A DNA stretch of 52,425 nucleotides, taken from assembly GCA_004431415.1 (NCBI GenBank), contig QPMI01000547.1, forward strand, positions 1 through 52,425. Reading direction: 5' to 3'. The DNA comes from Cyanophora paradoxa CCMP329 (Eukaryota > Plantae > Glaucophyta). Below the pieces are notes generated by a model. It saw only the letters and a list, made by a program, of their open reading frames with translations, had not been told where the DNA came from and did no database searches. Of the stretch, positions 4,523 through 29,616 are shown one piece after another; within the stretch, counting starts at the first letter, position 1, and each line of letters opens with the position of its first letter. The translations under genes were made by a program, and so were the position numbers.

Positions 4523-4674
4523 AAGACACCGAAAAGCAGCGATCGCTTGGCCAATGAGAAGGCGGTGGACGTCAAGCCCGCGGCGACCGTTAGAACTGAG
4601 AACCCAGAAGCGATCGCCGGCCCAGCAGCTCTTTGTTAGAGGTCGGACTCGCTGGGTATGGCGCCGAACACAAA

Positions 4675-4700
4675 GCGATCGCCGAGCAATGAGAAGGCTC
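4675..4700 (-). repeat. Right terminal inverted repeat (26 bp); also 10692-10717, 19995-20020, 29287-29312, 34430-34455 and ~42667-42690 (2 bp short)
   Basis: Its reverse complement GAGCCTTCTCATTGCTCGGCGATCGC aligns with left TIR GAGCCTTCTCATCGCTTCGGCGACCGC; the first 12 bp are identical. Confidence 0.9.
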
Positions 4701-5002
4701 TATGCGCGGGGCAGATCTAGCGATCCAATTGAATAGGGAATCTCTATGCGAGCAAGCTCGCAGCGCTACGGGAGGCGGGCACGCACTGCAGGCGTTGGCG
4801 TTGGCTGGTGCGACGAACTTGAAGCAGCTCCTGTGCAAGCGATCGCCGGTCTATGCGCGGGGCAGATCTAGCGATCCAATTGAATAGGGAATCTCTATGC
4901 GAGCAAGCTCGCAGCGCTACGGGAGGCGGGCACGCACTGCAGGCGTTGGCGTTGGCTGGTGCGACGAACTTGAAGCAGCTCCTGTGCAAGCGATCGCCGG
5001 TC
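4701..5002. repeat. Two tandem copies of the 151-bp spacer R (TATGCGCGGGGCAGATC...AAGCGATCGCCGGTC), followed by AGA and the next left TIR
   Basis: Units 4701-4851 and 4852-5002 are identical and lie outside the TIR pair. Confidence 0.95.
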
Positions 5003-5005
5003 AGA

Positions 5006-5032
5006 GAGCCTTCTCATCGCTTCGGCGACCGC
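5006..5032 (+). repeat. Left terminal inverted repeat (27 bp); also at 11023, 15155, 20326, 24462, 29617
   Basis: Inverted match to the right TIR; always preceded by ...GCGATCGCCGGTC-AGA. Confidence 0.9.
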
Positions 5033-5536
5033 CAGGCCCTGGTACCGAGTACTCCGGGGCAATCGCTAGCGCGAACCGTCGGACGACGGACGCGGCGCCG
5101 GCGATCGCTTAAAAAAGGCCCGGCCCGATCCGAGCCCATGGCCGGCGGCATAGTGAACATAGTGCCAAAATGTCGCCCCGAAATCACGGTTTTTAGAAGG
5201 ATCGGAAGAAAGCGCGCCCAAGCAGGACCGAGGGGCGGTTCCGGCACGTACCTACTGACTCAGAGCTGCTTGCGCTGGGCCCGCCGGCCGACGCCATGAG
5301 ACCCGGTTGAGAGCTCGAATCCCTGCGCGCCGCCTTACAGCGGCCGAGGATGGGGCGAAGGCTGCAGAATTCGATGATGTGCACCTCGGACAAGCGAAAG
5401 CGCGTAGCTAGCGCGCCGCCGGCGCCGCGGGTGAGCCGATGAAGCCAGCGATGTGTACTCCTCGCGTGCGCGGGCGCGGCGACGTCGCCTGCCGGGCGGG
5501 CGTGGCGCCGCGGGGCTGAGCACGGCGCGCGCACGG
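5006..5536 (+). repeat. Shared left arm S (~530 bp) common to X and Y; also 11023-11555, 15155-15686, 20326-20858, 24462-24993, 29617-30149
   Basis: Identical up to ...GCGCGCACGG, then branches to ACAGAGTCGG (Y) or CAGTGCACAT (X). Confidence 0.95.
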
Positions 5537-5927
5537 ACAGAGTCGGGCCCCAGCGCAGCCCGCGCACCGCAGACACTTCAGATGCGCGGAAGAGACGATG
5601 CTGTCGAGCTCGCCTCCGTGAAAGTCTGACGGCAGATGAGCTGGCCGTGCAGGAAGAATGCGCGGCGGTTGGCTGCGTGAGAGCAGACCGGATGGGATGC
5701 GACGCGACCCGCGCCGTTATAGTCTGAACAAACAACGAAACGAGGCGTCCCGCGTCCAGCGAAGCCTCCCGAACAGCGCGCGCCGCACACACGCGGCGGC
5801 CCACCGCCAGCGAAGCCGTCGTCGTCTCGGAACTCTGAGGTCGTACGGAGAGGTAAGTGAGGGCGCGAAGAACGACAGCGAAGACCGAGGAGCCCACCGC
5901 GAGGGATACCAGATCTCTTCTGACGCG

Positions 5928-7457
5928 ATGGCGCACGCCCGCTAAACGCCGATCTGGACGCGCTTCTAGAGCTGGCGAAAGCGGAACTCGACGATGACGA
6001 TGATGATGGCGATGCTATGGAGCTCGAGGAGGAGGCCGCGGCTGTAGTCGCTGCAGCAGCAGCTAAGGCGGCGGAGCTTCTGGCGCAGGCGAGGCTCCCC
6101 CGCAAGCCGCGAATGTACACATGGTGAATGAGATGATCGAACGCATCGTGGATGGTTCGCCTGCTTGCTGCAGCCGCGCGTCGCGCTGTTTGATTGCGAT
6201 TCTCCCCCCCCCCCACACACCCAGCTGAGACCGACTTCGTTCGCAGGCGACTTCGACGCGAAGTTCTTCTGGGCATTTCGCATGACGCCAACGACTTTCA
6301 CGTTCATTCACGATCGTATCCAACACAGCGAGGTGTACATCACCACTGGGAATGTCCACAGCTACCTGTAGAACTGCAGCTTGCAATTACATTGAGGAGA
6401 CTTGGCAGAGGACAGGCTATGAAGCTCTCCAAGAGATTTCCCTGTATCACAGGGCTTCATTTCGGAAGGTCTCTCTTTAGTTCAGTGGCGTTGTTTTCAT
6501 AATGAGTTCTGATGCGGTTCCACAGCTATCTCCCGCACACAGGCAGCCATATGTGAATATTTTCGAAAGACACATATGCAAGATCTGTTTCCCCGTACCC
6601 CGGAGCAGAAGGCAAGGGCACGGGCAGGATTTGAGCGCCTCGCAAAGCATTGGAACAAAAGGAATTTTACGCAACGGGGTTCACCAAGTGTGTCGGCGCA
6701 GTTGTACACACAGGCGTGACAGTTGAAGCAAGCAGTTTTGAACTGATCTCTATATTGCGCAGATGAAGCATGTTCATTATCGAGAACCCTCCGCAAGAGC
6801 ATCGATCCAAGTACTTCAGTCGTAAAGGAAGGAAGTCATTGAACGTCCAAGCAGCTTGCAATGCTAATGGTCTTTTCAACGACGTTAGTTCTTGTTATAT
6901 ATATATATGATCATGATAACTCAGCACACGTGATCATGTTGGGTCACTGATTACGTATACGTGAACAGGTGAGCATTAAATACCCTGGCAGCGTGCATGA
7001 TCAGAGAGTGTATGACAATTCAAGGCTGCACAAGCAGCGGAACACCATCTACAGTGACGGCGATTACAGGCTTGTCGACAGAGGGTACCGCATTGAGAAG
7101 GGTGCCTCCCCCACACAGCATACACGGTGCGTACATGTGCTCATGTTCAGATCTGATCTGACATTGACGAGCGCACATGCACATGTACAGATCTCGATGA
7201 TCTTGCAGCCGGCATACTGCAGGCAAAGTTAAACTATGACTTTGTGCATTCCATGTGCAGGAAGGTCATCGAGCGTGCATTTGGAAGGCTGAAGATGCGA
7301 TGGCTTGAGCTAGGCATCGGGATCAATCGCAAGCACCTTGGGCGCTCTTGTCAAACCATCTACGTAAGTACCCCCCTGGAACAAGATATTGAAACCTGAC
7401 ATACAATGGCGCAGGTGTGCTTCCTTCTACACAACATTTGCGAGCTCGGCGATTATC
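5928..7457 (+). pseudogene. Harbinger DDE transposase, C-terminally truncated copy
   Basis: Same exons as 11950-13638, broken after VCFLLHNICELGDY by the chimeric junction; several 1-bp deletions. Confidence 0.85.
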
Positions 7458-10400
7458 AGAAAAGACCGCTGACAGAGGACATGACGGGCGGGGGTACACA
7501 TACCGTCTGTAGAGCAAGGAGAGGAGGGGTATTGGAATGGGGCGCTCGGCTGTTCCCATCCACACGGCCTTGTTCCGTCGCGTGTACGGTGGGCGGACGT
7601 ACAGCTCGACCTCTTGCTCCACCTCCTCCATAATCCCCTGCGCATTTGGCTGCGAATTGCGTGAGCCGCCGCGACGACGATGGCGCCAGGAACGTGCTCA
7701 CCTCCTGTACTTTGTCGACCCTCACCTTGAACGCGGTCGCCCCCAGTTCGTCCACCTCCGGATACTCCTCTCCGGAGCTGTGGGATCGGTCCCCGCGGTT
7801 CAAGAGGCGGTGATTGGGGACGTCCGACTTTGCACCGATCTGCTCCAGCGCCGCTGTGACTTGCTTCAGCGCTGGCATGCTGTTGTGTGATACACGGCCT
7901 GTCCCGTACTTCTCCTGCGTCGAAGTTCAGTTCATGTACGTACCCCCCCCACGCTCCCTTACCCCCCGGGCGCACCACTATCTCGGGCTTGGAGCGTATC
8001 CTTGTGAAGGCCTCGTTCTCCGGGTCCTCGCGATAGACAGCCGCCGGATTCGCGAGCGCCTCGTGGCACGCCTGCCAAGAGACCGAAAGGCAGGCACGGT
8101 TCGGTTGTGGGTTAATCGCTAGGGGGTATCGAAGATTCTGTACCTTCAGCGGCCTCGGTGCTGGGTGGGGGGCTGCTCCGGGGTCCTCCCGGCATCCCGC
8201 CTTGCCTCCCACTGAGCTCGGGCCCTCCTTGCATCTCCGTGTTCATCCTCGTCGATTGCCAGTGCGAGATCGACGAGGCCCTTGAAGATGAGCTGGTTGA
8301 TGGTTGTTGCCCACCGTCGGAATCGAGCGATGCGGACAAGGCTTGAGAAGAAGATGCCAATGGAGATGCTGCTCGCTGGCCGGCAAGCAGGCGCAGGACC
8401 TCCATCCCACTCGTGCGGATGCGCTGCAAAGCCTTTTCGTCGATTGGTCTGCCGGCGCCGCTGTTGACGTTCTTGTTTCCTGTTCCCGACTGGCACTTCT
8501 CCACCAGCCTCTTGACTTCTTCGAACTCCGAGAGACCCGCCCGCGCCTTTCTCTTACGCCCCTTCTCTCTTGGCATCTCTTGCGCCAACATGTCCTCCAC
8601 AGCCGCTGCCGTAAGCTCGATACATGCATGCAACCTGTGACAGGAAGATCAGATCAGAAACGATGGCGTACCCCCCCCCCCCCGCCCCCCCCGCGCACCA
8701 AAGTTGGAGTGACTCGCCTTCGCTTGTCTGCTGTTGCGCTGACTGAAGTAAGCGGATCAGACTTCGGAGCTGCTCCTTTGCTTCTTCTGTTGTGCCTAGA
8801 TTTAAAGCTTGCTGGCTGAGCCCGAGAGTTGCCTGCATGCGTGGCAGATTGACTTGGGCCTGACCATTCTTAACCTGAGCGTGAAGTTGAGCTCGACGAA
8901 GTACAAGATTTAGATGAAGAATGTCACCTCCAGGAATGCATCAGCAAGAGACTGAGCTCGAGCTGGCTCGCGCTCCATATCTGCCTCTGCAGGTCGCCAG
9001 GCAAGAAGTTGTGTGAGCACCGCTGCAGCTGACCGGATATCGCCATCGACAGGAGCTGCAATGCAGTTAGACCACAACGAAGCGCCACTTAGCAGTCATT
9101 CAAATGCAACTCACAGTAGAAATCAAGCGACTCGCCGCCTGACTGACCAAAGAAGTACAGCTCGATCCATTGGGAGAGGTACAGCTTCGATTGTACAGCA
9201 TACGAGCGGCTATCTGCACGAGGCGCTGCGGGTTCCTGGAACTCCAGAGCCAAGATTACCTGCACACAAAGACACAATCAGCAGATGCAGCAAGCAGCAA
9301 GCATGTCAAACTTGCCAGGTCTATTTCACGCAATCTCCTCTCACGGGCGTAGATCTTGTTCTTGTAGAACCACTTGGCTCGCTCCTTTAGCCAATCGTGA
9401 TGCTTGTCTCGCATTTCCTTGTCCACTTCGAATTGCCCGTGCTCGCCTACAGAACCAAGGCCAAGAAATGCGCACTGCATCGGCATTCAGTACATTCACA
9501 CGATGGAAGAACAATAGAAGCTCACATCAATGTCAATGAGTTCCTCGTAATGCGAAGAACTCTTTGTCTCGTCACCGTTGCCGTCGTTTACATTGCGTGC
9601 AGCCTCTTGCTGGCGTGTCGACTCGAGCGCCACCTAAGATCATATTCAGAACAGAATCGCAAGATAAGTTGCAGTAAGAACTGCACCGAGCTCAAGAATT
9701 GCTTCAGAGCATTGAGCTCGTCCAGGGTCCGGTCCCGGGCCGGTTCGCCGCGAAACCGCACTCGGCAAGACCTAGCCTGAGCTTGAGCCGCCTGTGCTGT
9801 TATCTACACGAGCATGAGCTGACATCATAGGTACTCTGACAAATCCGTGCACCAGATCGAGCCAATCAACACAACTTTGAAATATGTCGCCTCGCTGTTC
9901 TCCATTCGTTTCCACGAACAAGTCCCGCAGCGCTTGCAAGGCTTGAGGTGGGGCAAGTTGATGAGAACGCCCTCTACGTAGTGCAGCATGGGGTCCAAAG
10001 CTGCACAACATATGAGAGATGCAGCAGTTAGGCCTCCGGGCTCGTGCACCAACATCGTGGCGGCGGTGTACACTGGGTCCGGGGCCGGGGGAGGGCAGGG
10101 CCGGGGGAGGGGCAGGGCCGGGGGAGGGGCAGGGCCGGGGGAGGGCGGGGTCGGGGGAGATGGAGGGGCGGGGCCCGGGGGATGGGCGGGGTCGGGGGGA
10201 GGGGCGGGGCCGGGGGGAGGGGCGGGGTCGGGGGGAGATGGAGGGGCGGGGCCCGGGGGATGGGCGGGGTCGGGGGGAGGGGCGGGGCCGGGGGGAGGGG
10301 CGGGCAGTACCCCTCTCCCCCGCGTCGCACCGGCCCCCGCCGCGCCGGTCAGCGTGGGGACAAGCTCAAGGCTGGAGCGAGCGCCGCCGCTTGCCGTGCT

Positions 10401-10539
10401 GCCCCCGAGGCCGCCCCCGAGGCCACCACCCGCCGTGCGGCCCGCCAGAAGGGGATTGGGAGATGAGCTGGAGGTCCACTCCATCTCTTCCTCCCCAAAG
10501 AGAGTGCTCCTGGGGTCGACATGCTGCGGAGTCGGGCAT
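7455..10539 (-). pseudogene. ORF3 copy lacking its last two exons
   Basis: Matches 1453-4522; the junction falls in the intron between the ...LLYRR and VANTE... exons. Confidence 0.75.
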
Positions 10540-10717
10540 AAGACACCGAAAAGCAGCGATCGCTTGGCCAATGAGAAGGCGGTGGACGTCAAGCCCGCGG
10601 CGACCGTTAGAACTGAGAACCCAGAAGCGATCGCCGGCCCAGCAGCTCTTTGTTAGAGGTCGGACTCGCTGGGTATGGCGCCGAACACAAAGCGATCGCC
10701 GAGCAATGAGAAGGCTC

Positions 10718-11019
10718 TATGCGCGGGGCAGATCTAGCGATCCAATTGAATAGGGAATCTCTATGCGAGCAAGCTCGCAGCGCTACGGGAGGCGGGCACG
10801 CACTGCAGGCGTTGGCGTTGGCTGGTGCGACGAACTTGAAGCAGCTCCTGTGCAAGCGATCGCCGGTCTATGCGCGGGGCAGATCTAGCGATCCAATTGA
10901 ATAGGGAATCTCTATGCGAGCAAGCTCGCAGCGCTACGGGAGGCGGGCACGCACTGCAGGCGTTGGCGTTGGCTGGTGCGACGAACTTGAAGCAGCTCCT
11001 GTGCAAGCGATCGCCGGTC
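10718..11019. repeat. Two copies of 151-bp spacer R
   Basis: Identical to 4701-5002. Confidence 0.95.
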
Positions 11020-11949
11020 AGAGAGCCTTCTCATCGCTTCGGCGACCGCCAGGCCCTGGTACCGAGTACTCCGGGGCAATCGCTAGCGCGAACCGTCGGA
11101 CGACGGACGCGGCGCCGGCGATCGCTTAAAAAAGGCCCCGGCCCGATCCGAGCCCATGGCCGGCGGGCATAGTGAACATAGTGCCAAAATGTCGCCCCGA
11201 AATCACGGTTTTTAGAAGGATCGGAAGAAAGCGCGCCCAAGCAGGACCGAGGGGCGGTTCCGGCACGTACCTACTGACTCAGAGCTGCTTGCGCTGGGCC
11301 CGCCGGCCGACGCCATGAGACCCGGTTGAGAGCTCGAATCCCTGCGCGCCGCCTTACAGCGGCCGAGGATGGGGCGAAGGCTGCAGAATTCGATGATGTG
11401 CACCTCGGACAAGCGAAAGCGCGTAGCTAGCGCGCCGCCGGCGCCGCGGGTGAGCCGATGAAGCCAGCGATGTGTACTCCTCGCGTGCGCGGGCGCGGCG
11501 ACGTCGCCTGCCGGGCGGGCGTGGCGCCGCGGGGCTGAGCACGGCGCGCGCACGGACAGAGTCGGGCCCCAGCGCAGCCCGCGCACCGCAGACACTTCAG
11601 ATGCGCGGAAGAGACGATGCTGTCGAGCTCGCCTCCGTGAAAGTCTGACGGCAGATGAGCTGGCCGTGCAGGAAAGAATGCGCGGCGGTTGGCTGCGTGA
11701 GAGCAGACCGGATGGGATGCGACGCGACCCGCGCCGTTATAGTCTGAACAAACAACGAAACGAGGGCGTCCCGCGTCCAGCGAAGCCTCCCGAACAGCGC
11801 GCGCCGCACACACGCGGCGGCCCACCGCCAGCGAAGCCGTCGTCGTCTCGGAACTCTGAGGTCGTACGGAGAGGTAAGTGAGGGCGCGAAGAACGACAGC
11901 GAAGACCGAGGAGCCCACCGCGAGGGATACCAGATCTCTTCTGACGGCG

Positions 11950-13638
11950 ATGGCGCACGCCCCGCTAAACGCCGATCTGGACGCGCTTCTAGAGCTGGCG
12001 AAAGCGGAACTCGACGATGACGATGATGATGGCGATGCTATGGAGCTCGAGGAGGAGGCCGCGGCTGTAGTCGCTGCAGCAGCAGCTAAGGCGGCGGAGC
12101 TTCTGGCGCAGGCGAGGCTCCCCCGCAAGCCGCGAATGTACACATGGTGGAATGAGATGATCGAACGCATCGTGGATGGTTCGCCTGCTTGCTGCAGCCG
12201 CGCGTCGCGCTGTTTGATTGCGATTCTCCCCCCCCCCCCACACACACCCAGCTGAGACCGACTTCGTTCGCAGGCGACTTCGACGCGAAGTTCTTCTGGG
12301 CATTTCGCATGACGCCAACGACTTTCACGTTCATTCACGATCGTATCCAACACAGCGAGGTGTACATCACCACTGGGAATGTCCCACAGCTACCTGTAGA
12401 ACTGCAGCTTGCAATTACATTGAGGAGACTTGGGCAGAGGACAGGCTATGAAGCTCTCCAAGGAGATTTCCCTGTATCACAGGGCTTCATTTCGGAAGGT
12501 CTCTCTTTAGTTCAGTGGCGTTGTTTTCATAATGAGTTCTGATGCGGTTCCACAGCTATCTCCCGCACACAGGCAGCCATATGTGAATATTTTCGAAAGA
12601 CACATATGCAAGATCTGTTTCCCCGTACCCCGGAGCAGAAGGCAAGGGCACGGGCAGGATTTGAGCGCCTCGCAAAGCATTGGAACAAAAGGAATTTTTA
12701 CGCAACGGGGTTCACCAAGTGTGTCGGCGCAGTTGGTACACACAGGCGTGACAGTTGAAGCAAGCAGTTTTGAACTGATCTCTATATTGCGCAGATGGAA
12801 GCATGTTCATTATCGAGAACCCTCCGCAAGAGCATCGATCCAAGTACTTCAGTCGTAAAGGAAGGAAGTCATTGAACGTCCAAGCAGCTTGCAATGCTAA
12901 TGGTCTTTTCAACGACGTTAGTTCTTGTTATATATATATATGATCATGATAACTCAGCACACGTGATCATGTTGGGTCACTGATTACGTATACGTGAACA
13001 GGTGAGCATTAAATACCCTGGCAGCGTGCATGATCAGAGAGTGTATGACAATTCAAGGCTGCACAAGCAGCGGAACACCATCTACAGTGACGGCGATTAC
13101 AGGCTTGTCGACAGAGGGTACCGCATTGAGAAGGGGTGCCTCCCCCCACACAGCATACACGGTGCGTACATGTGCTCATGTTCAGATCTGATCTGACATT
13201 GACGAGCGCACATGCACATGTACAGATCTCGATGATCTTGCAGCCGGCATACTGCAGGCAAAGTTAAACTATGACTTTGTGCATTCCATGTGCAGGAAGG
13301 TCATCGAGCGTGCATTTGGAAGGCTGAAGATGCGATGGCTTGAGCTAGGCATCGGGATCAATCGCAAGCACCTTGGGCGCTCTTGTCAAACCATCTACGT
13401 AAGTACCCCCCTGGAACAAGATATTGAAACCTGACATACAATGGCGCAGGTGTGCTTCCTTCTACACAACATTTGCGAGCTCGGCGATTATCCCTGGCCG
13501 GAGGAAGAGGCCCCGGAGGCAGACGCTCCGGGCGACGTTGAGGGTGCACCTGCGGAAGGACCCCCGAACATCCTTGAGCAGGGTGGGGCACGTGCCGAGC
13601 GGCTATGGCAGGCGGATCACCTGTACGGCATCCAGTAG
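11950..13638 (+). CDS. PIF/Harbinger (HARBI1-like, DDE_Tnp_4-type) transposase, 7 exons, ~425 aa, apparently intact
   Basis: Six in-phase GT-AG introns. Spliced product contains AFRMTPTTF, PVELQLAITLRRLG, KCVGAVDG (D1, split by intron 12736-12794), YFSRKGRKSLNVQA, YPGSVHD, LVDRGY (D2), HSMCRKVIERAFGRLKMRW (E) and CFLLHNIC, all hallmark Harbinger motifs. Confidence 0.95.
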
Positions 13639-13646
13639 CTAAGTAG

Positions 13647-15095
13647 CTAGCTTGAAGCCCATCTGCATCCGCATCGGGCTCGAAGGGCCTCTTGCGGCGC
13701 TTCTCCTTCTCCTCCTTCTCTTTCTTCTCCTTCTCCTTCTTCTCCTTCTCCTTCTGTTCTTTGATCTCGTTCATCTGTGTTCTCGAAATTGACATGAGCA
13801 CGAGTGTATGTGATGCAGCGTGCACCAAAACCGACGGTACTCTGCCTTGTCCGCGGCTTCCTGTTCACGAATGTCATTGCTGCGGCTGAGCTGGTCTCGT
13901 ACCCCTCGACGCTGCTGGAGAGCATAGACATCCCTCAGCTGCCACCTCGGTCGGATTGCGCCTGTTGATCTGATGCTTCGTAATCCCTCGCCAGGCCTAG
14001 GCGGGCGGCCGGGCAGAGCAGGGCTTGACAAGCATGAAGTAAGTATGTGCAAGGCAGTGCTGAAAAGGAAGCAATGCATACCCTGAGCTCGATCCTGGAC
14101 TCCCCTGCCTTGGAACTGGATGGATGTCCTGGGGAAAAAGATGAGAGGGGTACACAGTCAAGGAGGGTGGGCATGTACCCGTCCCCATCTGATTCCATAG
14201 AGAAGGGCGGGTTCAGCTCTGGTGAGTTGCCGAGCCACGGCTTGATTTTCTGCTGAATTCATGAGAACTCGGGCAGAGCTCAATCTTTGAAACACGCACC
14301 ATGTAGTCGCCCTGGGAAAGGAAGTAGTGCCAGGGGAAGTCAGGGTCCGTGAGCTTCTTGCCGCTTGTCTCGGCAGCAAGGTAGATTTTGAACTTGTCGT
14401 GGGCCTTGTTCCAACGGTCCAAGAACTTCACACGCCCGGCCGTAACATCAGCACGTGCAGCCTCGACGAAGGATTTGATGTTCGGCCGCTGGGGAGATTG
14501 TCAGGCAAATAAGCAGAGATGAAGCACCACCGAACACATGTACCAGAGAGCCCTGTCTGAGCCATTCGTCGAAGGCCGAACTGATCACGGCGGGCCTGAG
14601 CTTCTGCTTGCTGCCCGGCTTTTTATTGTCGGCCATTCCCTTGGCGACAATGATACCGACGGCCAGAGTCCATGCCTCTGGATTGTTCTTCCATTCGAAC
14701 CTGCAAACACTTGCCCATGTAAGGTCACCCATGTTAGAAAAAGTCGGGGCTTGGTGCAAAAGCACCGCGCAGTACGCGAAGGGGAAGGTACTGGTGGCAA
14801 GACCATCGTGCCGGGCGATGGCGACCTGCGAGTGAAAGCGTGAGCGCGAGCTCCAGACTAAAGATGAGCATGAGAAGAGCCCACTTAGCAGGCGATGTCC
14901 CGTGCGGCCGAGACGAAGCAGAGCGGCTGCAGAACATCAATTTAAGCGGGGCAAATCGAACGTAAAGCATGCGGAAAGCGCACGGTGCTCCGTTTGGGAA
15001 GTTCTCCGAGGCAGAGGAGATGAGCACCTCCGTCATCGGCGGTTCAACGGGAATCCTGCGGGCGCAATTGAGCATGGCAGAGAGTAGTTCAGTCA
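13647..15095 (-). CDS. Myb/SANT(trihelix)-like DNA-binding partner protein of the Harbinger element; probably 5'-truncated
   Basis: Spliced exons FEWKNNPEAWTLAVG...FDEWLRQGSL | RPNIK...KFLDRWNKAHDKFK...TSG...FPWHYF...YM | KIKPWLGNSPELNPP with spaced Trp residues; KE-rich coiled-coil tail with KRRKR. The assignment rests on this pattern plus the established two-gene Harbinger organisation. Confidence 0.65.
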
Positions 15096-15154
15096 TGGCG
15101 TTGGCTGGTGCGACGAACTTGAAGCAGCTCCTGTGCAAGCGATCGCCGGTCAGA

Positions 15155-18100
15155 GAGCCTTCTCATCGCTTCGGCGACCGCCAGGCCCTGGTACCGAGTA
15201 CTCCGGGGCAATCGCTAGCGCGAACCGTCGGACGACGGACGCGGCGCCGGCGATCGCTTAAAAAAGGCCCCGGCCCGATCCGAGCCCATGGCCGGCGGGC
15301 ATAGTGAACATAGTGCCAAAATGTCGCCCCGAAATCACGGTTTTTAGAAGGATCGGAAGAAAGCGCGCCCAAGCAGGACCGAGGGGCGGTTCCGGCACGT
15401 ACCTACTGACTCAGAGCTGCTTGCGCTGGGCCGCCGGCCGACGCCATGAGACCCGGTTGAGAGCTCGAATCCCTGCGCGCCGCCTTACAGCGGCCGAGGA
15501 TGGGGCGAAGGCTGCAGAATTCGATGATGTGCACCTCGGACAAGCGAAAGCGCGTAGCTAGCGCGCCGCCGGCGCCGCGGGTGAGCCGATGAAGCCAGCG
15601 ATGTGTACTCCTCGCGTGCGCGGGCGCGGCGACGTCGCCTGCCGGGCGGGCGTGGCGCCGCGGGGCTGAGCACGGCGCGCGCACGGCAGTGCACATGCGC
15701 ATCGGGCGGTGTTGACGTTCGCGCGCTGCAGCTGCATGCATGGCGCCGGCCGGGCGCGCGGAAGTTGGTTTTTTTTGCTATTCGTCCCCCTGCGCTTCTC
15801 CCCCCCCTTCATTCCCCCCGAAGTTAGCCACCGGTGGCTAACTTGCGATCGAAGGGTACAGGGATCACCCTCCTGAAATTGATCTCTTACAAAACCAACG
15901 CTGTCGTAGAACCCTACACTATCTGCAAGCGGAATCAGGCAATCTGCAGTCCTACGAAAGCCTTGCACCGCTGCAGGAGCCCTTTTGCCTGCTCTTCGTT
16001 CGCGAAGATGTCAGGATGCCCCGCGCGGGGCGCGCGGAACCACTCTGTGGAGGCGGCCACAAATGGTGCGCATGCTGTGGGATCGCGCAGGTGGTGGCCA
16101 CTGCACACCACCCGGCCCAGCGCGGGGAAAACAGGACCTCCAGGACGCGGTCGACCCGGCACTTCGCTTTGAAAGTAGACCCAGCGGTCGTGCGCGCGTT
16201 CATCTGGTATGCTGGATCAGAGAGCTCGACGATCGCATGCACCACCCTGCAACCAGTGTCATGATCGGCACGCTGCGCAACGACACCGTTACAGATAGAA
16301 AAAGGAAAGGAAAGGAAGAGAAAGTAAGAAAGAGAAGGGGGAAGAAAGACAGAATGAAAGAAAAGAAAGGAAAGGACGCACGGCCAGTGGTCCCACTCCA
16401 GGTTCTTGAAGCTCTTCAGGATGTGCATGATCGCCTCCGGCGTAACGTTCACGTCGTCGAGCCGTCGGACTTCGCATGCGACGGTGCATGCACCTAGGCC
16501 TTGCCGGGCCGTGCACGCCAGGTCTCCGTCGTTGGGTGGGAGTCGGGCAAGAACCTCCACGTATGCGCGCACTGCAGGGCTCGAGGCTCTCGCCCCGCGC
16601 ACCGCAGTTGCGATTTCCGCAACGCTGTCGCGCACTGAACGATAGCCGTTCTCCTCCCGCGTCATTGCGGGAAACATGTGCAGCTTCGCCTTCAGGGTGG
16701 TGCTCATCTGGTTAAGGAAGCGGTTCTCGGTGTTCGCGACTCTGCGACGAGAAATCAGAAAAGACCGCTGACAGAGGACATGACGGGCGGGGTACACATA
16801 CCGTCTGTAGAGCAAGGAGAGGAGGGGTATTGGAATGGGGCGCTCGGCTGTTCCCATCCACACGGCCTTGTTCCGTCGCGTGTACGGTGGGCGGACGTAC
16901 AGCTCGACCTCTTGCTCCACCTCCTCCATAATCCCCTGCGCATTTGGCTGCGAATTGCGTGAGCCGCCGCGACGACGATGGCGCCAGGAACGTGCTCACC
17001 TCCTGTACTTTGTCGACCCTCACCTTGAACGCGGTCGCCCCCAGTTCGTCCACCTCCGGATACTCCTCTCCGGAGCTGTGGGATCGGTCCCGCGGTTCAA
17101 GAGGCGGTGATTGGGGACGTCCGACTTTGCACCGATCTGCTCCAGCGCCGCTGTGACTTGCTTCAGCGCTGGCATGCTGTTGTGTGATACACGGCCTGTC
17201 CCGTACTTCTCCTGCGTCGAAGTTCAGTTCATGTACGTACCCCCCCCACGCTCCCTTACCCCCCGGGCGCACCACTATCTCGGGCTTGGAGCGTATCCTT
17301 GTGAAGGCCTCGTTCTCCGGGTCCTCGCGATAGACAGCCGCCGGATTCGCGAGCGCCTCGTGGCACGCCTGCCAAGAGACCGAAAGGCAGGCACGGTTCG
17401 GTTGTGGGTTAATCGCTAGGGGGTATCGAAGATTCTGTACCTTCAGCGGCCTCGGTGCTGGGTGGGGGGCTGCTCCGGGGTCCTCCCCGGCATCCCGCCT
17501 TGCCTCCCACTGAGCTCGGGCCCTCCTTGCATCTCCGTGTTCATCCTCGTCGATTGCCAGTGCGAGATCGACGAGGCCCTTGAAGATGAGCTGGTTGATG
17601 GTTGTTGCCCACCGTCGGAATCGAGCGATGCGGACAAGGCTTGAGAAGAAGATGCCAATGGAGATGCTGCTCGCTGGCCCGGCAAGCAGGCGCAGGACCT
17701 CCATCCCACTCGTGCGGATGCGCTGCAAAGCCTTTTCGTCGATTGGTCTGCCGGCGCCGCTGTTGACGTTCTTGTTTCCTGTTCCCGACTGGCACTTCTC
17801 CACCAGCCTCTTGACTTCTTCGAACTCCGAGAGACCCGCCCGCGCCTTTCTCTTACGCCCCTTCTCTCTTGGCATCTCTTGCGCCAACATGTCCTCCACA
17901 GCCGCTGCCGTAAGCTCGATACATGCATGCAACCTGTGACAGGAAGATCAGATCAGAAACGATGGCGTACCCCCCCCCCCCCGCGGCCCCCCGCGCACCA
18001 AAGTTGGAGTGACTCGCCTTCGCTTGTCTGCTGTTGCGCTGACTGAAGTAAGCGGATCAGACTTCGGAGCTGCTCCTTTGCTTCTTCTGTTGTGCCTAGA

Positions 18101-20020
18101 TTTAAAGCTTGCTGGCTGAGCCCGAGAGTTGCCTGCATGCGTGGCAGATTGACTTGGGCCTGACCATTCTTAACCTGAGCGTGAAGTTGAGCTCGACGAA
18201 GTACAAGATTTAGATGAAGAATGTCACCTCCAGGAATGCATCAGCAAGAGACTGAGCTCGAGCTGGCTCGCGCTCCATATCTGCCTCTGCAGGTCGCCAG
18301 GCAAGAAGTTGTGTGAGCACCGCTGCAGCTGACCGGATATCGCCATCGACAGGAGCTGCAATGCAGTTAGACCACAACGAAGCGCCACTTAGCAGTCATT
18401 CAAATGCAACTCACAGTAGAAATCAAGCGACTCGCCGCCTGACTGACCAAAGAAGTACAGCTCGATCCATTGGGAGAGGTACAGCTTCGATTGTACAGCA
18501 TACGAGCGGCTATCTGCACGAGGCGCTGCGGGTTCCTGGAACTCCAGAGCCAAGATTACCTGCACACAAAGACACAATCAGCAGATGCAGCAAGCAGCAA
18601 GCATGTCAAACTTGCCAGGTCTATTTCACGCAATCTCCTCTCACGGGCGTAGATCTTGTTCTTGTAGAACCACTTGGCTCGCTCCTTTAGCCAATCGTGA
18701 TGCTTGTCTCGCATTTCCTTGTCCACTTCGAATTGCCCGTGCTCGCCTACAGAACCAAGGCCAAGAAATGCGCACTGCATCGGCATTCAGTACATTCACA
18801 CGATGGAAGAACAATAGAAGCTCACATCAATGTCAATGAGTTCCTCGTAATGCGAAGAACTCTTTGTCTCGTCACCGTTGCCGTCGTTTACATTGCGTGC
18901 AGCCTCTTGCTGGCGTGTCGACTCGAGCGCCACCTAAGATCATATTCAGAACAGAATCGCAAGATAAGTTGCAGTAAGAACTGCACCGAGCTCAAGAATT
19001 GCTTCAGAGCATTGAGCTCGTCCAGGGTCCGGTCCCGGGCCGGTTCGCCGCGAAACCGCACTCGGCAAGACCTAGCCTGAGCTTGAGCCGCCTGTGCTGT
19101 TATCTACACGAGCATGAGCTGACATCATAGGTACTCTGACAAATCCGTGCACCAGATCGAGCCAATCAACACAACTTTGAAATATGTCGCCTCGCTGTTC
19201 TCCATTCGTTTCCACGAACAAGTCCCGCAGCGCTTGCAAGGCTTGAGGTGGGGGCAAGTTGATGAGAACGCCCTCTACGTAGTGCAGCATGGGGTCCAAA
19301 GCTGCACAACATATGAGAGATGCAGCAGTTAGGCCTCCGGGCTCGTGCACCAACATCGTGGCGGCGGTGTACACTGGGTCCGGGGCCGGGGGGAGGGGCA
19401 GGGCCGGGGGGAGGGGCAGGGCCGGGGGGAGGGGCAGGGCCGGGGGGAGGGGCGGGGTCGGGGGGAGATGGAGGGGCGGGGCCCGGGGGATGGGCGGGGT
19501 CGGGGGGAGGGGCGGGGCCGGGGGGAGGGGCGGGGTCGGGGGGAGATGGAGGGGCGGGGCCCGGGGATGGGCGGGGTCGGGGGGAGGGGCGGGGCCGGGG
19601 GGAGGGGCGGGCAGTACCCCTCTCCCCGCGTCGCACCGGCCCCGCCGCGCCGGTCAGCGTGGGGACAAGCTCAAGGCTGGAGCGAGCGCCGCCGCTTGCC
19701 GTGCTGCCCCGAGGCCGCCCCGAGGCCACCACCCGCCGTGCGGCCCGCCAGAAGGGGATTGGGAGATGAGCTGGAGGTCCACTCCATCTCTTCCTCCCCA
19801 AAGAGAGTGCTCCTGGGGTCGACATGCTGCGGAGTCGGGCATAAGACACCGAAAAGCAGCGATCGCTTGGCCAATGAGAAGGCGGTGGACGTCAAGCCCG
19901 CGGCGACCGTTAGAACTGAGAACCCAGAAGCGATCGCCGGCCCAGCAGCTCTTTGTTAGAGGTCGGACTCGCTGGGTATGGCGCCGAACACAAAGCGATC
20001 GCCGAGCAATGAGAAGGCTC
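15155..20020 (+). mobile_element. Form X element (complete, TIR to TIR, ~4.87 kb)
   Basis: Left TIR at 15155, X branch at 15687, right TIR 19995-20020. Confidence 0.9.
15935..19842 (-). CDS. ORF3, spliced unknown protein (start uncertain)
   Basis: Same exon chain as copy 1; long ORFs 16712-17932 and 15952-16929 carry the central exons. Confidence 0.78.
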
Positions 20021-20322
20021 TATGCGCGGGGCAGATCTAGCGATCCAATTGAATAGGGAATCTCTATGCGAGCAAGCTCGCAGCGCTACGGGAGGCGGGC
20101 ACGCACTGCAGGCGTTGGCGTTGGCTGGTGCGACGAACTTGAAGCAGCTCCTGTGCAAGCGATCGCCGGTCTATGCGCGGGGCAGATCTAGCGATCCAAT
20201 TGAATAGGGAATCTCTATGCGAGCAAGCTCGCAGCGCTACGGGAGGCGGGCACGCACTGCAGGCGTTGGCGTTGGCTGGTGCGACGAACTTGAAGCAGCT
20301 CCTGTGCAAGCGATCGCCGGTC
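20021..20322. repeat. Two copies of 151-bp spacer R
   Basis: Identical to 4701-5002. Confidence 0.95.
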
Positions 20323-21252
20323 AGAGAGCCTTCTCATCGCTTCGGCGACCGCCAGGCCCTGGTACCGAGTACTCCGGGGCAATCGCTAGCGCGAACCGTC
20401 GGACGACGGACGCGGCGCCGGCGATCGCTTAAAAAAGGCCCCGGCCCGATCCGAGCCCATGGCCGGCGGGCATAGTGAACATAGTGCCAAAATGTCGCCC
20501 CGAAATCACGGTTTTTAGAAGGATCGGAAGAAAGCGCGCCCAAGCAGGACCGAGGGGCGGTTCCGGCACGTACCTACTGACTCAGAGCTGCTTGCGCTGG
20601 GCCCGCCGGCCGACGCCATGAGACCCGGTTGAGAGCTCGAATCCCTGCGCGCCGCCTTACAGCGGCCGAGGATGGGGCGAAGGCTGCAGAATTCGATGAT
20701 GTGCACCTCGGACAAGCGAAAGCGCGTAGCTAGCGCGCCGCCGGCGCCGCGGGTGAGCCGATGAAGCCAGCGATGTGTACTCCTCGCGTGCGCGGGCGCG
20801 GCGACGTCGCCTGCCGGGCGGGCGTGGCGCCGCGGGGCTGAGCACGGCGCGCGCACGGACAGAGTCGGGCCCCAGCGCAGCCCGCGCACCGCAGACACTT
20901 CAGATGCGCGGAAGAGACGATGCTGTCGAGCTCGCCTCCGTGAAAGTCTGACGGCAGATGAGCTGGCCGTGCAGGAAAGAATGCGCGGCGGTTGGCTGCG
21001 TGAGAGCAGACCGGATGGGATGCGACGCGACCCGCGCCGTTATAGTCTGAACAAACAACGAAACGAGGGCGTCCCGCGTCCAGCGAAGCCTCCCGAACAG
21101 CGCGCGCCGCACACACGCGGCGGCCCACCGCCAGCGAAGCCGTCGTCGTCTCGGAACTCTGAGGTCGTACGGAGAGGTAAGTGAGGGCGCGAAGAACGAC
21201 AGCGAAGACCGAGGAGCCCACCGCGAGGGATACCAGATCTCTTCTGACGGCG

Positions 21253-22939
21253 ATGGCGCACGCCCCGCTAAACGCCGATCTGGACGCGCTTCTAGAGCTG
21301 GCGAAAGCGGAACTCGACGATGACGATGATGATGGCGATGCTATGGAGCTCGAGGAGGAGGCCGCGGCTGTAGTCGCTGCAGCAGCAGCTAAGGCGGCGG
21401 AGCTTCTGGCGCAGGCGAGGCTCCCCCGCAAGCCGCGAATGTACACATGGTGGAATGAGATGATCGAACGCATCGTGGATGGTTCGCCTGCTTGCTGCAG
21501 CCGCGCGTCGCGCTGTTTGATTGCGATTCTCCCCCCCCCCCCCACACACCCAGCTGAGACCGACTTCGTTCGCAGGCGACTTCGACGCGAAGTTCTTCTG
21601 GGCATTTCGCATGACGCCAACGACTTTCACGTTCATTCACGATCGTATCCAACACAGCGAGGTGTACATCACCACTGGGAATGTCCCACAGCTACCTGTA
21701 GAACTGCAGCTTGCAATTACATTGAGGAGACTTGGGCAGAGGACAGGCTATGAAGCTCTCCAAGGAGATTTCCCTGTATCACAGGGCTTCATTTCGGAAG
21801 GTCTCTCTTTAGTTCAGTGGCGTTGTTTTCATAATGAGTTCTGATGCGGTTCCACAGCTATCTCCCGCACACAGGCAGCCATATGTGAATATTTTCGAAA
21901 GACACATATGCAAGATCTGTTTCCCCGTACCCCGGAGCAGAAGGCAAGGGCACGGGCAGGATTTGAGCGCCTCGCAAAGCATTGGAACAAAAGGAATTTT
22001 TACGCAACGGGGTTCACCAAGTGTGTCGGCGCAGTTGGTACACACAGGCGTGACAGTTGAAGCAAGCAGTTTTGAACTGATCTCTATATTGCGCAGATGG
22101 AAGCATGTTCATTATCGAGAACCCTCCGCAAGAGCATCGATCCAAGTACTTCAGTCGTAAAGGAAGGAAGTCATTGAACGTCCAAGCAGCTTGCAATGCT
22201 AATGGTCTTTTCAACGACGTTAGTTCTTGTTATATATATATATGATCATGATAACTCAGCACACGTGATCATGTTGGGTCACTGATTACGTATACGTGAA
22301 CAGGTGAGCATTAAATACCCTGGCAGCGTGCATGATCAGAGAGTGTATGACAATTCAAGGCTGCACAAGCAGCGGAACACCATCTACAGTGACGGCGATT
22401 ACAGGCTTGTCGACAGAGGGTACCGCATTGAGAAGGGGTGCCTCCCCCACACAGCATACACGGTGCGTACATGTGCTCATGTTCAGATCTGATCTGACAT
22501 TGACGAGCGCACATGCACATGTACAGATCTCGATGATCTTGCAGCCGGCATACTGCAGGCAAAGTTAAACTATGACTTTGTGCATTCCATGTGCAGGAAG
22601 GTCATCGAGCGTGCATTTGGAAGGCTGAAGATGCGATGGCTTGAGCTAGGCATCGGGATCAATCGCAAGCACCTTGGGCGCTCTTGTCAAACCATCTACG
22701 TAAGTACCCCCCTGGAACAAGATATTGAAACCTGACATACAATGGCGCAGGTGTGCTTCCTTCTACACAACATTTGCGAGCTCGGCGATTATCCCTGGCC
22801 GGAGGAAGAGGCCCCGGAGGCAGACGCTCCGGGCGACGTTGAGGGTGCACCTGCGGAAGGACCCCCGAACATCCTTGAGCAGGGTGGGGCACGTGCCGAG
22901 CGGCTATGGCAGGCGGATCACCTGTACGGCATCCAGTAG
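21253..22939 (+). CDS. PIF/Harbinger DDE transposase (one C-run 1-bp deletion near 22445, probably a sequencing error)
   Basis: Same 7 exons and DDE motifs as 11950-13638. Confidence 0.9.
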
Positions 22940-22947
22940 CTAAGTAG

Positions 22948-24402
22948 CTAGCTTGAAGCCCCATCTGCATCCGCATCGGGCTCGAAGGGCCTCTTGCGGC
23001 GCTTCTCCTTCTCCTCCTTCTCTTTCTTCTCCTTCTCCTTCTTCTCCTTCTCCTTCTGTTCTTTGATCTCGTTCATCTGTGTTCTCGAAATTGACATGAG
23101 CACGAGTGTATGTGATGCAGCGTGCACCAAAAACCGACGGTACTCTGCCTTGTCCGCGGCTTCCTGTTCACGAATGTCATTGCTGCGGCTGAGCTGGTCT
23201 CGTACCCCCTCGACGCTGCTGGAGAGCATAGACATCCCCTCAGCTGCCACCTCGGTCGGATTGCGCCTGTTGATCTGATGCTTCGTAATCCCCTCGCCAG
23301 GCCTAGGCGGGCGGCCGGGCAGAGCAGGGCTTGACAAGCATGAAGTAAGTATGTGCAAGGCAGTGCTGAAAAGGAAGCAATGCATACCCTGAGCTCGATC
23401 CTGGACTCCCCTGCCTTGGAACTGGATGGATGTCCTGGGGAAAAAGATGAGAGGGGTACACAGTCAAGGAGGGTGGGCATGTACCCCGTCCCCATCTGAT
23501 TCCATAGAGAAGGGCGGGTTCAGCTCTGGTGAGTTGCCGAGCCACGGCTTGATTTTCTGCTGAATTCATGAGAACTCGGGCAGAGCTCAATCTTTGAAAC
23601 ACGCACCATGTAGTCGCCCTGGGAAAGGAAGTAGTGCCAGGGGAAGTCAGGGTCCGTGAGCTTCTTGCCGCTTGTCTCGGCAGCAAGGTAGATTTTGAAC
23701 TTGTCGTGGGCCTTGTTCCAACGGTCCAAGAACTTCACACGCCCGGCCGTAACATCAGCACGTGCAGCCTCGACGAAGGATTTGATGTTCGGCCGCTGGG
23801 GAGATTGTCAGGCAAATAAGCAGAGATGAAGCACCACCGAACACATGTACCAGAGAGCCCTGTCTGAGCCATTCGTCGAAGGCCGAACTGATCACGGCGG
23901 GCCTGAGCTTCTGCTTGCTGCCCGGCTTTTTATTGTCGGCCATTCCCTTGGCGACAATGATACCGACGGCCAGAGTCCATGCCTCTGGATTGTTCTTCCA
24001 TTCGAACCTGCAAACACTTGCCCATGTAAGGTCACCCATGTTAGAAAAAGTCGGGGCTTGGTGCAAAAGCACCGCGCAGTACGCGAAGGGGAAGGTACTG
24101 GTGGCAAGACCATCGTGCCGGGCGATGGCGACCTGCGAGTGAAAGCGTGAGCGCGAGCTCCAGACTAAAGATGAGCATGAGAAGAGCCCACTTAGCAGGC
24201 GATGTCCCGTGCGGCCGAGACGAAGCAGAGCGGCTGCAGAACATCAATTTAAGCGGGGCAAATCGAACGTAAAGCATGCGGAAAGCGCACGGTGCTCCGT
24301 TTGGGAAGTTCTCCGAGGCAGAGGAGATGAGCACCTCCGTCATCGGCGGTTCAACGGGAATCCTGCGGGCGCAATTGAGCATGGCAGAGAGTAGTTCAGT
24401 CA
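22948..24402 (-). CDS. Myb/SANT-like partner protein, probably 5'-truncated
   Basis: Copy of 13647-15095; last exon QMNEIKEQKEKEKK...DADGASS* is in frame here. Confidence 0.65.
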
Positions 24403-24461
24403 TGGCGTTGGCTGGTGCGACGAACTTGAAGCAGCTCCTGTGCAAGCGATCGCCGGTCAGA

Positions 24462-27400
24462 GAGCCTTCTCATCGCTTCGGCGACCGCCAGGCCCTGGTA
24501 CCGAGTACTCCGGGGCAATCGCTAGCGCGAACCGTCGGACGACGGACGCGGCGCCGGCGATCGCTTAAAAAAGGCCCCGGCCCGATCCGAGCCCATGGCC
24601 GGCGGGCATAGTGAACATAGTGCCAAAATGTCGCCCCGAAATCACGGTTTTTAGAAGGATCGGAAGAAAGCGCGCCCAAGCAGGACCGAGGGCGGTTCCG
24701 GCACGTACCTACTGACTCAGAGCTGCTTGCGCTGGGCCCGCCGGCCGACGCCATGAGACCCGGTTGAGAGCTCGAATCCCTGCGCGCCGCCTTACAGCGG
24801 CCGAGGATGGGGCGAAGGCTGCAGAATTCGATGATGTGCACCTCGGACAAGCGAAAGCGCGTAGCTAGCGCGCCGCCGGCGCCGCGGGTGAGCCGATGAA
24901 GCCAGCGATGTGTACTCCTCGCGTGCGCGGGCGCGGCGACGTCGCCTGCCGGGCGGGCGTGGCGCCGCGGGGCTGAGCACGGCGCGCGCACGGCAGTGCA
25001 CATGCGCATCGGGCGGTGTTGACGTTCGCGCGCTGCAGCTGCATGCATGGCGCCGGCCGGGCGCGCGGAAGTTGGTTTTTTTTGCTATTCGTCCCCCCTG
25101 CGCTTCTCCCCCCCTTCATTCCCCCGAAGTTAGCCACCGGTGGCTAACTTGCGATCGAAGGGTACAGGGATCACCCTCCTGAAATTGATCTCTTACAAAA
25201 CCAACGCTGTCGTAGAACCCTACACTATCTGCAAGCGGAATCAGGCAATCTGCAGTCCTACGAAAGCCTTGCACCGCTGCAGGAGCCCTTTTGCCTGCTC
25301 TTCGTTCGCGAAGATGTCAGGATGCCCCGCGCGGGGCGCGCGGAACCACTCTGTGGAGGCGGCCACAAATGGTGCGCATGCTGTGGGATCGCGCAGGTGG
25401 TGGCCACTGCACACCACCCGGCCCCAGCGCGGGGAAAACAGGACCTCCAGGACGCGGTCGACCCGGCACTTCGCTTTGAAAGTAGACCCAGCGGTCGTGC
25501 GCGCGTTCATCTGGTATGCTGGATCAGAGAGCTCGACGATCGCATGCACCACCCCTGCAACCAGTGTCATGATCGGCACGCTGCGCAACGACACCGTTAC
25601 AGATAGAAAAAGGAAAGGAAAGGAAGAGAAAGTAAGAAAGAGAAGGGGGGAAGAAAGACAGAATGAAAGAAAAGAAAGGAAAGGACGCACGGCCAGTGGT
25701 CCCACTCCAGGTTCTTGAAGCTCTTCAGGATGTGCATGATCGCCTCCGGCGTAACGTTCACGTCGTCGAGCCGTCGGACTTCGCATGCGACGGTGCATGC
25801 ACCTAGGCCTTGCCGGGCCGTGCACGCCAGGTCTCCGTCGTTGGGTGGGAGTCGGGCAAGAACCTCCACGTATGCGCGCACTGCAGGGCTCGAGGCTCTC
25901 GCCCCGCGCACCGCAGTTGCGATTTCCGCAACGCTGTCGCGCACTGAACGATAGCCGTTCTCCTCCCGCGTCATTGCGGGAAACATGTGCAGCTTCGCCT
26001 TCAGGGTGGTGCTCATCTGGTTAAGGAAGCGGTTCTCGGTGTTCGCGACTCTGCGACGAGAAATCAGAAAAGACCGCTGACAGAGGACATGACGGGCGGG
26101 GGTACACATACCGTCTGTAGAGCAAGGAGAGGAGGGGTATTGGAATGGGGCGCTCGGCTGTTCCCATCCACACGGCCTTGTTCCGTCGCGTGTACGGTGG
26201 GCGGACGTACAGCTCGACCTCTTGCTCCACCTCCTCCATAATCCCCTGCGCATTTGGCTGCGAATTGCGTGAGCCGCCGCGACGACGATGGCGCCAGGAA
26301 CGTGCTCACCTCCTGTACTTTGTCGACCCTCACCTTGAACGCGGTCGCCCCCAGTTCGTCCACCTCCGGATACTCCTCTCCGGAGCTGTGGGATCGGTCC
26401 CCGCGGTTCAAGAGGCGGTGATTGGGGACGTCCGACTTTGCACCGATCTGCTCCAGCGCCGCTGTGACTTGCTTCAGCGCTGGCATGCTGTTGTGTGATA
26501 CACGGCCTGTCCCGTACTTCTCCTGCGTCGAAGTTCAGTTCATGTACGTACCCCCCCCACGCTCCCTTACCCCCCGGGCGCACCACTATCTCGGGCTTGG
26601 AGCGTATCCTTGTGAAGGCCTCGTTCTCCGGGTCCTCGCGATAGACAGCCGCCGGATTCGCGAGCGCCTCGTGGCACGCCTGCCAAGAGACCGAAAGGCA
26701 GGCACGGTTCGGTTGTGGGTTAATCGCTAGGGGGTATCGAAGATTCTGTACCTTCAGCGGCCTCGGTGCTGGGTGGGGGCTGCTCCGGGGTCCTCCCGGC
26801 ATCCCGCCTTGCCTCCCACTGAGCTCGGGCCCTCCTTGCATCTCCGTGTTCATCCTCGTCGATTGCCAGTGCGAGATCGACGAGGCCCTTGAAGATGAGC
26901 TGGTTGATGGTTGTTGCCCACCGTCGGAATCGAGCGATGCGGACAAGGCTTGAGAAGAAGATGCCAATGGAGATGCTGCTCGCTGGCCCGGCAAGCAGGC
27001 GCAGGACCTCCATCCCACTCGTGCGGATGCGCTGCAAAGCCTTTTCGTCGATTGGTCTGCCGGCGCCGCTGTTGACGTTCTTGTTTCCTGTTCCCGACTG
27101 GCACTTCTCCACCAGCCTCTTGACTTCTTCGAACTCCGAGAGACCCGCCCGCGCCTTTCTCTTACGCCCCTTCTCTCTTGGCATCTCTTGCGCCAACATG
27201 TCCTCCACAGCCGCTGCCGTAAGCTCGATACATGCATGCAACCTGTGACAGGAAGATCAGATCAGAAACGATGGCGTACCCCCCCCCCCCCCCCCCCCCC
27301 GCGCACCAAAGTTGGAGTGACTCGCCTTCGCTTGTCTGCTGTTGCGCTGACTGAAGTAAGCGGATCAGACTTCGGAGCTGCTCCTTTGCTTCTTCTGTTG

Positions 27401-29312: not shown

Positions 29313-29613
29313 TATGCGCGGGCAGATCTAGCGATCCAATTGAATAGGGAATCTCTATGCGAGCAAGCTCGCAGCGCTACGGGAGGCGGGCACGCACTGC
29401 AGGCGTTGGCGTTGGCTGGTGCGACGAACTTGAAGCAGCTCCTGTGCAAGCGATCGCCGGTCTATGCGCGGGGCAGATCTAGCGATCCAATTGAATAGGG
29501 AATCTCTATGCGAGCAAGCTCGCAGCGCTACGGGAGGCGGGCACGCACTGCAGGCGTTGGCGTTGGCTGGTGCGACGAACTTGAAGCAGCTCCTGTGCAA
29601 GCGATCGCCGGTC
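29313..29613. repeat. Two copies of spacer R (150+151 bp)
   Basis: As above; one G is missing in the first unit. Confidence 0.95.
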
Positions 29614-29616
29614 AGA

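Follow-up and report, generated by a model that had tools for sequence, protein, structure and literature searches.

Eukaryotic cut-and-paste transposons are usually viewed as self-contained, dispersed elements, and tandem copies of them as by-products. Here, a tandem array of a Harbinger-type transposon family was analyzed in a 52,425-nt stretch of Cyanophora paradoxa CCMP329 DNA (contig QPMI01000547.1 of assembly GCA_004431415.1, forward strand; hereafter the window), whose gene order is paralleled by the C. paradoxa gene models g18120–g18128 (tig00021096). Harbingers normally encode two proteins (PMC4482050, PMC9710019), and the Myb-like protein of Harbinger3_DR binds a repeated subterminal motif (PMC9710019). 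Three-protein groups are also known, namely HarbingerS, with a SET domain, and TET+ PHISTA (PMC12730594). DNA transposons are known to form tandem arrays through double insertion and unequal exchange, as for the P element, hobo and Bari1 (10.1101/158386), and junction-dependent expression is known from circles and dimers of the bacterial insertion sequences (ISs) IS2, IS911, IS30 and IS21 (PMC3219604). The Cyanophora array is a real and unusual variant of the known Harbinger superfamily, and its most interesting feature is a transcriptional link across the junctions between its units. With a probability of about 0.6, we consider that the family lives in arrays and that the fixed end–spacer–end junction supplies an outward promoter.

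The anatomy of the array was derived from a comparison of the window with itself and a scan for element ends; coordinates refer to the plus strand unless the minus strand is named. Six left terminal inverted repeats (TIRs) start at 5005, 11022, 15154, 20325, 24461 and 29616, and five intact right TIRs end at 4701, 10718, 20021, 29313 and 34456. Two units, Y (11022–15095) and X (15154–20021), have their first 533 bp in common and are divergent beyond. Y contains a transposase gene and a convergent second gene, here called the partner gene, and lacks a canonical right TIR; X is bounded by two TIRs, with open reading frame 3 (ORF3) as its sole gene. A preliminary description of this stretch had proposed the same shared left TIR and arm of about 530 bp, as well as an X with both TIRs and only ORF3, and both points were confirmed, its unit starts lying 1 base inside those found here.

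The units in the window follow in the order X, a Y′/X′ deletion hybrid, Y, X, Y, X and X, and then host DNA. The first X occupies 1–4701 and is separated by two spacer units from the hybrid (5005–10718), in which a deletion with a 3-bp microhomology has fused Y 13492, in the last transposase exon, to about X 16757, in ORF3; its structure implies a putative third Y+X block that was later deleted. Both full Y copies have an X next, so that the proposed Y+X block of about 9 kb stands and is present twice (the second, with its part of the spacer, at 20325–29313), but the two units do not abut directly, as 56 bp of spacer B and a CAG lie between them (15096–15153). The strict alternation of Y and X with starts at 11023, 20326 and 29617 was not upheld, for the third of these units (29616–34456) is an X that follows an X, with 29558–34757 matching 15096–20322. 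The array ends on the right with four spacer units, then CAG and host DNA (34454–35062, by repeat and end scans).

The transcription of the array was followed in assembled contigs of two RNA runs (X15 and X20) and compared with two DNA runs. Three joints, 15054–15118, 15129–15402 and 15471–15534, were present in both RNA runs and in 0 DNA runs, all of them GT-AG on the minus strand. The first marks a 63-bp intron of the partner mRNA (15056–15118, minus strand), which spans the junction between Y and spacer B at 15095/15096; the second marks a 272-bp intron (15131–15402, minus strand), which spans the inner left TIR. These border-crossing joints indicate that B supplies one 12-bp exon of the partner mRNA and that the left arm beyond it supplies others (15640–15535 and 15472–15403, minus strand), with a splicing depth similar to that of coding exons in the two RNA runs. 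The partner gene thus uses an arm beyond its own unit, and the link between units exceeds what had been proposed before. An ATG at 15096 was rejected as the partner start, as it sits in an intron.

Further, an arm exon was joined in run X20 (loose end at 15639) to a Y-type first exon (11587–11707, minus strand) through a 79-bp GT-AG intron (11586–11508). This exon lies 240–360 bp upstream of the transposase start on the opposite strand, and the joining of an arm exon to Y-type sequence there points to a divergent promoter; its RNA differs at 2 bases from the window and may derive from a sister copy. A spacer-to-spacer joint and a spacer-to-right-arm joint at 19826 were also present in RNA and show this transcript continuing into units upstream; in addition, a joint at 19302–19640 connects a right-arm exon to ORF3. 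Arm exons are accordingly spliced toward the left into the partner gene and, in a sister arm, from the spacer into the right arm; the extension to ORF3 would follow the same pattern. In this array, X would drive the partner gene and Y would drive ORF3. No Cyanophora Harbinger and no eukaryotic element gene spliced from the end of a neighbour was found in the literature, with Repbase Reports and most subscription journals outside the search. Three-gene Harbingers and tandem transposon arrays are already known, and the apparent coupling by neighbour-end splicing was found in no report.

In the reading that we favour, Y would be the enzyme-bearing member of the family, with the transposase and the partner and without a normal right arm, and X would be one of several non-autonomous members, carrying ORF3 as an old resident gene of the family. 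Head-to-tail members would be linked by a fixed module of right arm, 151-bp spacer, CAG and left arm, and the left arm would be transcribed outward through its own TIR, its exons being spliced onto the gene of the unit to its left. Since the 5′ exons of the partner lie in the adjoining left arm, Y could not make the partner protein without a left arm alongside, and it would need the right TIR of a neighbour for movement.

Several observations weigh against this reading. Assembled RNA contigs give no start sites and can merge alleles of different copies, and the only first exon seen is Y-type, yet the partner genes of the window precede X-type arms. The RNA contig with the partner gene carries majority arm alleles that do not occur in the window. 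The partner copy that is expressed may therefore sit elsewhere in the genome, next to a different arm, and this would also speak against Y and X as an exclusive pair. Likewise, the spacer-to-right-arm contig (19826) has sister-arm alleles, not those of X. The right TIRs are followed by ATG, not CWG, and no dispersed copy, left array border or pair of target-site duplications (TSDs) was seen in the window. Finally, binding of the partner protein to the family's motif is a prediction and, like the role of ORF3, a proposal only.

The array copies are near-identical and differ essentially in homopolymer length only, so their exact number and order depend on the long-read assembly; this reflects either very recent amplification or assembly smoothing. 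It is very improbable, in our estimate, that the repetition of Y+X is partly an assembly artefact, with one Y and a few X copies duplicated or mis-ordered and no functional pairing. The identity of the copies save for homopolymers, the lack of a contig spanning a whole unit and the X at the third period are what such an artefact would leave. However, the hybrid junction recurs in RNA run X15 (loose end at 16754) and the Y–B splice is likewise present in independent RNA runs, and the depth ratio of ORF3 to partner, 4.6–6, fits about 15 ORF3 models vs. 2–3 partner copies.

An array-living family, as favoured here, is also consistent with the DNA depth, taken as summed contig depth relative to the partner gene, a rough measure, though the gap is large. 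In the two DNA runs, ORF3 reached 4.6 and 6.0, the left arm 38 and 107, and the TIR tips and spacer 75–162, and the alleles of the window made up 7–11% of all arms. Loose ends at 15682, 15686, 15886, 19503, 19743 and 19857 reveal that the left arm can be followed, and the right arm preceded, by other interiors. As the arms and spacer are far deeper than the partner gene and are joined to other interiors, Y and X are two members of a large family with the same ends. The data do not show them to be halves of one element, and the earlier picture of two complementary halves was too narrow, given that the arms far exceed Y plus X and that an ORF3 subfamily occurs in same-armed elements. Its suggestion of a helper and a cargo survived in part: Y is the only transposase source seen, X, with its two TIRs, is non-autonomous, and beside these arms stands ORF3, an old gene present in multiple copies.

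The same data bear on an ancestral three-gene element within one pair of TIRs, from which X lost the transposase and partner and Y lost ORF3 and the right arm, the two then complementing each other. The gene order of Y+X fits such an origin, ORF3 is old and diversified beside the same arms, and three-protein Harbingers exist (PMC12730594). We nevertheless regard it as unlikely: the upstream side of the partner enters spacer B in DNA contigs (X10 record 1, to 15125), its 5′ intron and exons are made of B and left-arm DNA rather than ORF3-side DNA, none of the loose ends listed indicates a longer form, and the window contains no three-gene unit without an inner end.

The ends and the spacer are built to one plan throughout the array. 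The left TIR of Y (11022–11049), preceded by CAG, has a 17-bp core and measures about 28 bp with its motif, and left and right TIRs are identical at 16 of the 17 terminal bases. Behind it, the left arm common to Y and X (11022–11555, 533 bp) carries the minus-strand exons of the 5′ untranslated region (5′-UTR); in X the inner left TIR and left arm lie at 15154–15686. The right arm of X (19743–20021) has three subterminal motifs, a splice acceptor at 19827 and a right TIR that is followed by ATG. The spacer at 20020–20324 consists of two 151-bp units (A, 94–95 bp; B, 56 bp) and then CAG; the B between Y and X has one subterminal motif and the 12-bp mini-exon. The depth of the spacer matches that of the TIRs, and it shows variants of its own, so it is a component of the family and not of this locus; the same two points led to its rejection as a local host flank. 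A miniature inverted-repeat transposable element made of arm, spacer and arm was rejected as well, the borders of the module being variable. Where two spacer units meet, the sequence is compatible with an excision that was repaired on a 2-bp microhomology and also with simple slippage. At 20016, a G-to-C variant within the right TIR was found in RNA contigs, from a transcribed sister arm.

An 8-bp palindromic motif occurs 8 times per Y+X unit against 0.5 expected, always near ends and in B. All six left tips are preceded by the motif, 4 bp and CAG, and the right border of the array is the same motif–4 bp–CAG site followed by host DNA. Further, a host break at 41760 lies within 4 bp of a palindrome copy in host DNA (49682 in the intact duplicate; the host DNA has two such copies), with the order motif, 4 bp and CTG on the other strand; the chance of this single case is about 0.006 for nearness to the motif and 0.04 for the triplet. 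It supports a putative cutting at CWG beside the motif, as one case in which a 3-bp microhomology blurs the exact break. Because ATG follows the right TIRs, no TSD pair is visible.

These flanks also bear on the idea that Y is a complete two-gene element ending at B. In that case B would be the terminus of every unit, and a single 3-bp target duplication (CAG, or AGA if the register is shifted) would be common to all, as in double-insertion tandems, X would be a passenger, and the promoter link would be incidental read-through. Y has the same triplet on both sides, the array terminates with B, CAG and host DNA, and cases in which tandem copies have a single TSD in common and later increase in number have been described (10.1101/158386). 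In three DNA contigs the match to the reference stops precisely where B ends (15151) and other sequence follows, so B may act as a derived right end, but that sequence does not open with a CWG. The 15 outermost bases of the TIR are missing from B, whose motif lies 4 bp from the tip vs. 19–20 in the TIR, and the clean splicing in two runs at coding-exon-like depth exceeds stray read-through. Taken together, we find this explanation quite unlikely.

Under the favoured reading, with an outward promoter at each junction, a new left end would attach to a CWG located 4 bp beyond the palindromic motif, with the partner protein as its probable guide. The array would then grow by unequal exchange and be worn down by deletions at microhomologies, blocks would move as composites by their outer ends, and the tandem state would be selected because Y has neither a right TIR nor a partner promoter of its own. 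A stronger version, to which we would give less than even odds, is an array-obligate system, in which the transposase puts new left ends by the family's own motif, and the junction is a reusable promoter and 5′-UTR for any gene that happens to lie upstream. The transposase, the partner and the ancient third gene would then sit on separate cassettes, functional only when lined up in an array and mobile as composites.

The genes of Y were then characterized; here and for ORF3, searches of Pfam, PDB and the like were made exon by exon or with database gene models, joined spliced models serving as frame checks only. The transposase gene (11950–13638) has 7 exons and an open frame, and encodes 425 aa with an intact D-D-E triad. 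Three of its exons matched DDE_Tnp_4 in Pfam (E values of 8e-9, 6e-6 and 1e-3), a transposase type that would place the family in PIF/Harbinger in the broad sense; a viral scan with one transposase exon gave no match. The partner gene (13647–15036, minus strand) is convergent with the transposase gene and was delimited from RNA joints and models; it is spliced in two RNA runs and encodes about 300–320 aa, its 3′ exons being uncertain. In our judgement by eye it looks like a trihelix Myb/SANT protein, which no tool confirmed: no Pfam, PDB, Atlas or fold match was obtained, and fold searches, made with a single-sequence model of predicted local distance difference test (pLDDT) score 55, gave generic helical bundles only. 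The earlier account of Y therefore holds for the transposase, the second gene and the missing canonical right TIR, but its Myb-like assignment is unconfirmed. A fused ORF3–partner model (g18127) was rejected, being an ab initio model with no RNA joint listed for the fusion. The stops of the transposase and partner genes lie about 10 bp apart on opposite strands (13638–13647), so that an overlap of their 3′-UTRs is unavoidable and double-stranded RNA might result.

ORF3 (15935–19787, minus strand) encodes 868 aa from the ATG at 19290 or 923 aa from that at 19787 and has 12–13 introns. Its frame was obtained after correction of four 1-bp assembly errors from read data and with the use of one GC-AG intron (18615–18560), at which its relative, contig L001 of run SRR31724264, has GT-AG. 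Seven of the introns are listed as RNA joints, indicating expression, and the remainder rest on the frame and on L001. The two proteins are 42% identical over 895 columns, that is, over the whole length, with 12 of 12 introns at the same place and phase and four-fold sites only 27% identical and thus saturated; together these indicate strong long-term purifying selection on ORF3. L001 ends 20 bp past the stop in two runs, suggesting a repeat border. Among the EukProt models of C. paradoxa, ORF3 was found on at least 11 contigs, with neighbouring gene numbers on three (often tandem), and a second subfamily (b), 55–68% identical, continues into the same left arm. ORF3 is therefore not an ordinary single-copy host gene, a possibility that the preliminary description had set out for checking.

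Relatives of ORF3 were limited to Cyanophora models and L001 in HMMER searches over 1.84 billion proteins and in word searches, and a JGI metagenome scan was without match. Neither Pfam nor PDB gave a match by exons and database models, which covered the N-terminal third only in part, and Atlas features gave weak hits only, under 0.9. An AlphaFold model from an 8-row alignment had a pLDDT of 37 and was not used for a fold search. From its sequence ORF3 has a basic stretch, a possible nuclear signal, and as a guess it could be a nuclear accessory factor of the family, e.g., in anti-silencing or regulation. A G-rich minisatellite at 19381–19611 is skipped by the RNA joint 19302–19640; a donor at 19350 would turn it into a proline-rich exon, but the joint passes over it, and L001 has a short C-rich stretch (1–40) at the same position. 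Both RNA runs also contain an X form in which 2.7 kb of ORF3 (16195–18913) are skipped and 21 filler letters stand instead; it is probably transcribed from a further deletion derivative at a different place in the genome. At 15862–16079, over the 3′ end of ORF3, heavily substituted DNA contigs with a depth above that of ORF3 itself represent diverged sister units that keep this part.

Compared with the described systems, the Cyanophora family resembles canonical PIF/Harbinger elements and NuwaI (the Harbinger3_DR type) in its DDE_Tnp_4 transposase (425 aa), second gene (about 300 aa) and short TIRs, and its repeated subterminal palindrome resembles the motif bound by the Myb-like protein of Harbinger3_DR (PMC9710019). 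It differs from canonical elements in its arrays with a fixed spacer, in the 5′ exons that the partner takes from a neighbour and in an extra gene in separate units; the Myb/SANT domain of the canonical second gene was not detected in the partner. The CWG target of NuwaI agrees with the CAG found at each left tip and with the CTG of one host break, and not with the ATG at the right tips; the NuwaI TIR usually begins with GGG (PMC4482050), the Cyanophora TIR with AGA. The TWA target of the PIF/Harbinger group of Han et al. is not seen. Like Pangu/Harbinger2, the family has a TIR starting with AG and a motif-less second ORF, but in neither register is there ANT on both sides, as the duplication of that group requires. 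Spy has a single ORF and an AAATTT target without TSD; the Cyanophora family has a second gene and other flanks.

HarbingerS and TET+ PHISTA share with it a third long-resident gene in a Harbinger-related family. Their genes lie in one element, however, and the extra protein is a known chromatin enzyme, whereas no domain is recognisable in ORF3, which is carried by separate non-autonomous units; neither SET nor TET/JBP was found in it, with the N-terminal third covered only in part. Double-insertion tandems of the P element, hobo and Bari1 are alike in head-to-tail order, identical junctions, expansion by unequal exchange and deletions across junctions. They differ in that the Cyanophora junction is a family-wide 151-bp spacer and not a TSD, that units are mixed and that splicing crosses the junction; about 300 bp of spacer stands where one TSD would lie between abutted TIRs, an arrangement found here only if B counts as an end. 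In bacterial IS junction promoters, joined right and left ends are needed for the expression of element genes, and the Cyanophora junction would work in the same way. Those promoters are formed by abutted tips, while the Cyanophora promoter would lie inside the arm, in a eukaryote, with another transposase family and a spacer of 150–300 bp, and circles are not part of the evidence. VANDAL/VANC anti-silencing, as cited in PMC12730594, also combines a transposon-borne accessory gene with a family rich in short repeated motifs; it belongs to the MuDR family, and no similarity to ORF3 was found.

A partner gene that apparently draws its 5′ exons from a neighbour would select for arrays and for insertion beside kin, offering a testable route from a transposon to a functional gene-cassette array, in parallel with the bacterial IS junction promoters. 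ORF3, a conserved and expressed protein of 870–920 aa, could supply a new kind of accessory function in transposons. If the partner guides insertion by the family's own motif, the system would be a simple model of sequence-directed Harbinger targeting.

Past the array, a 7.9-kb host duplication (34757–41762 and 42690–49680) includes the right end of X and two spacer units, which are again joined to host DNA at 41760–42990 (self-comparison and end scan). Its break cuts short a very GC-rich gene next to a host copy of the transposon motif. An intron-rich host gene at 36470–38800 (duplicate from about 44370) lies wholly within the duplication and has a likely signal peptide and a C-terminal membrane helix; one of its exons gave no Pfam match. 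Immediately right of the array, 35063–36200 is non-coding repeat-like DNA with an imperfect inverted repeat at 35945–36060 and a palindrome copy at 35290, possibly another mobile element.

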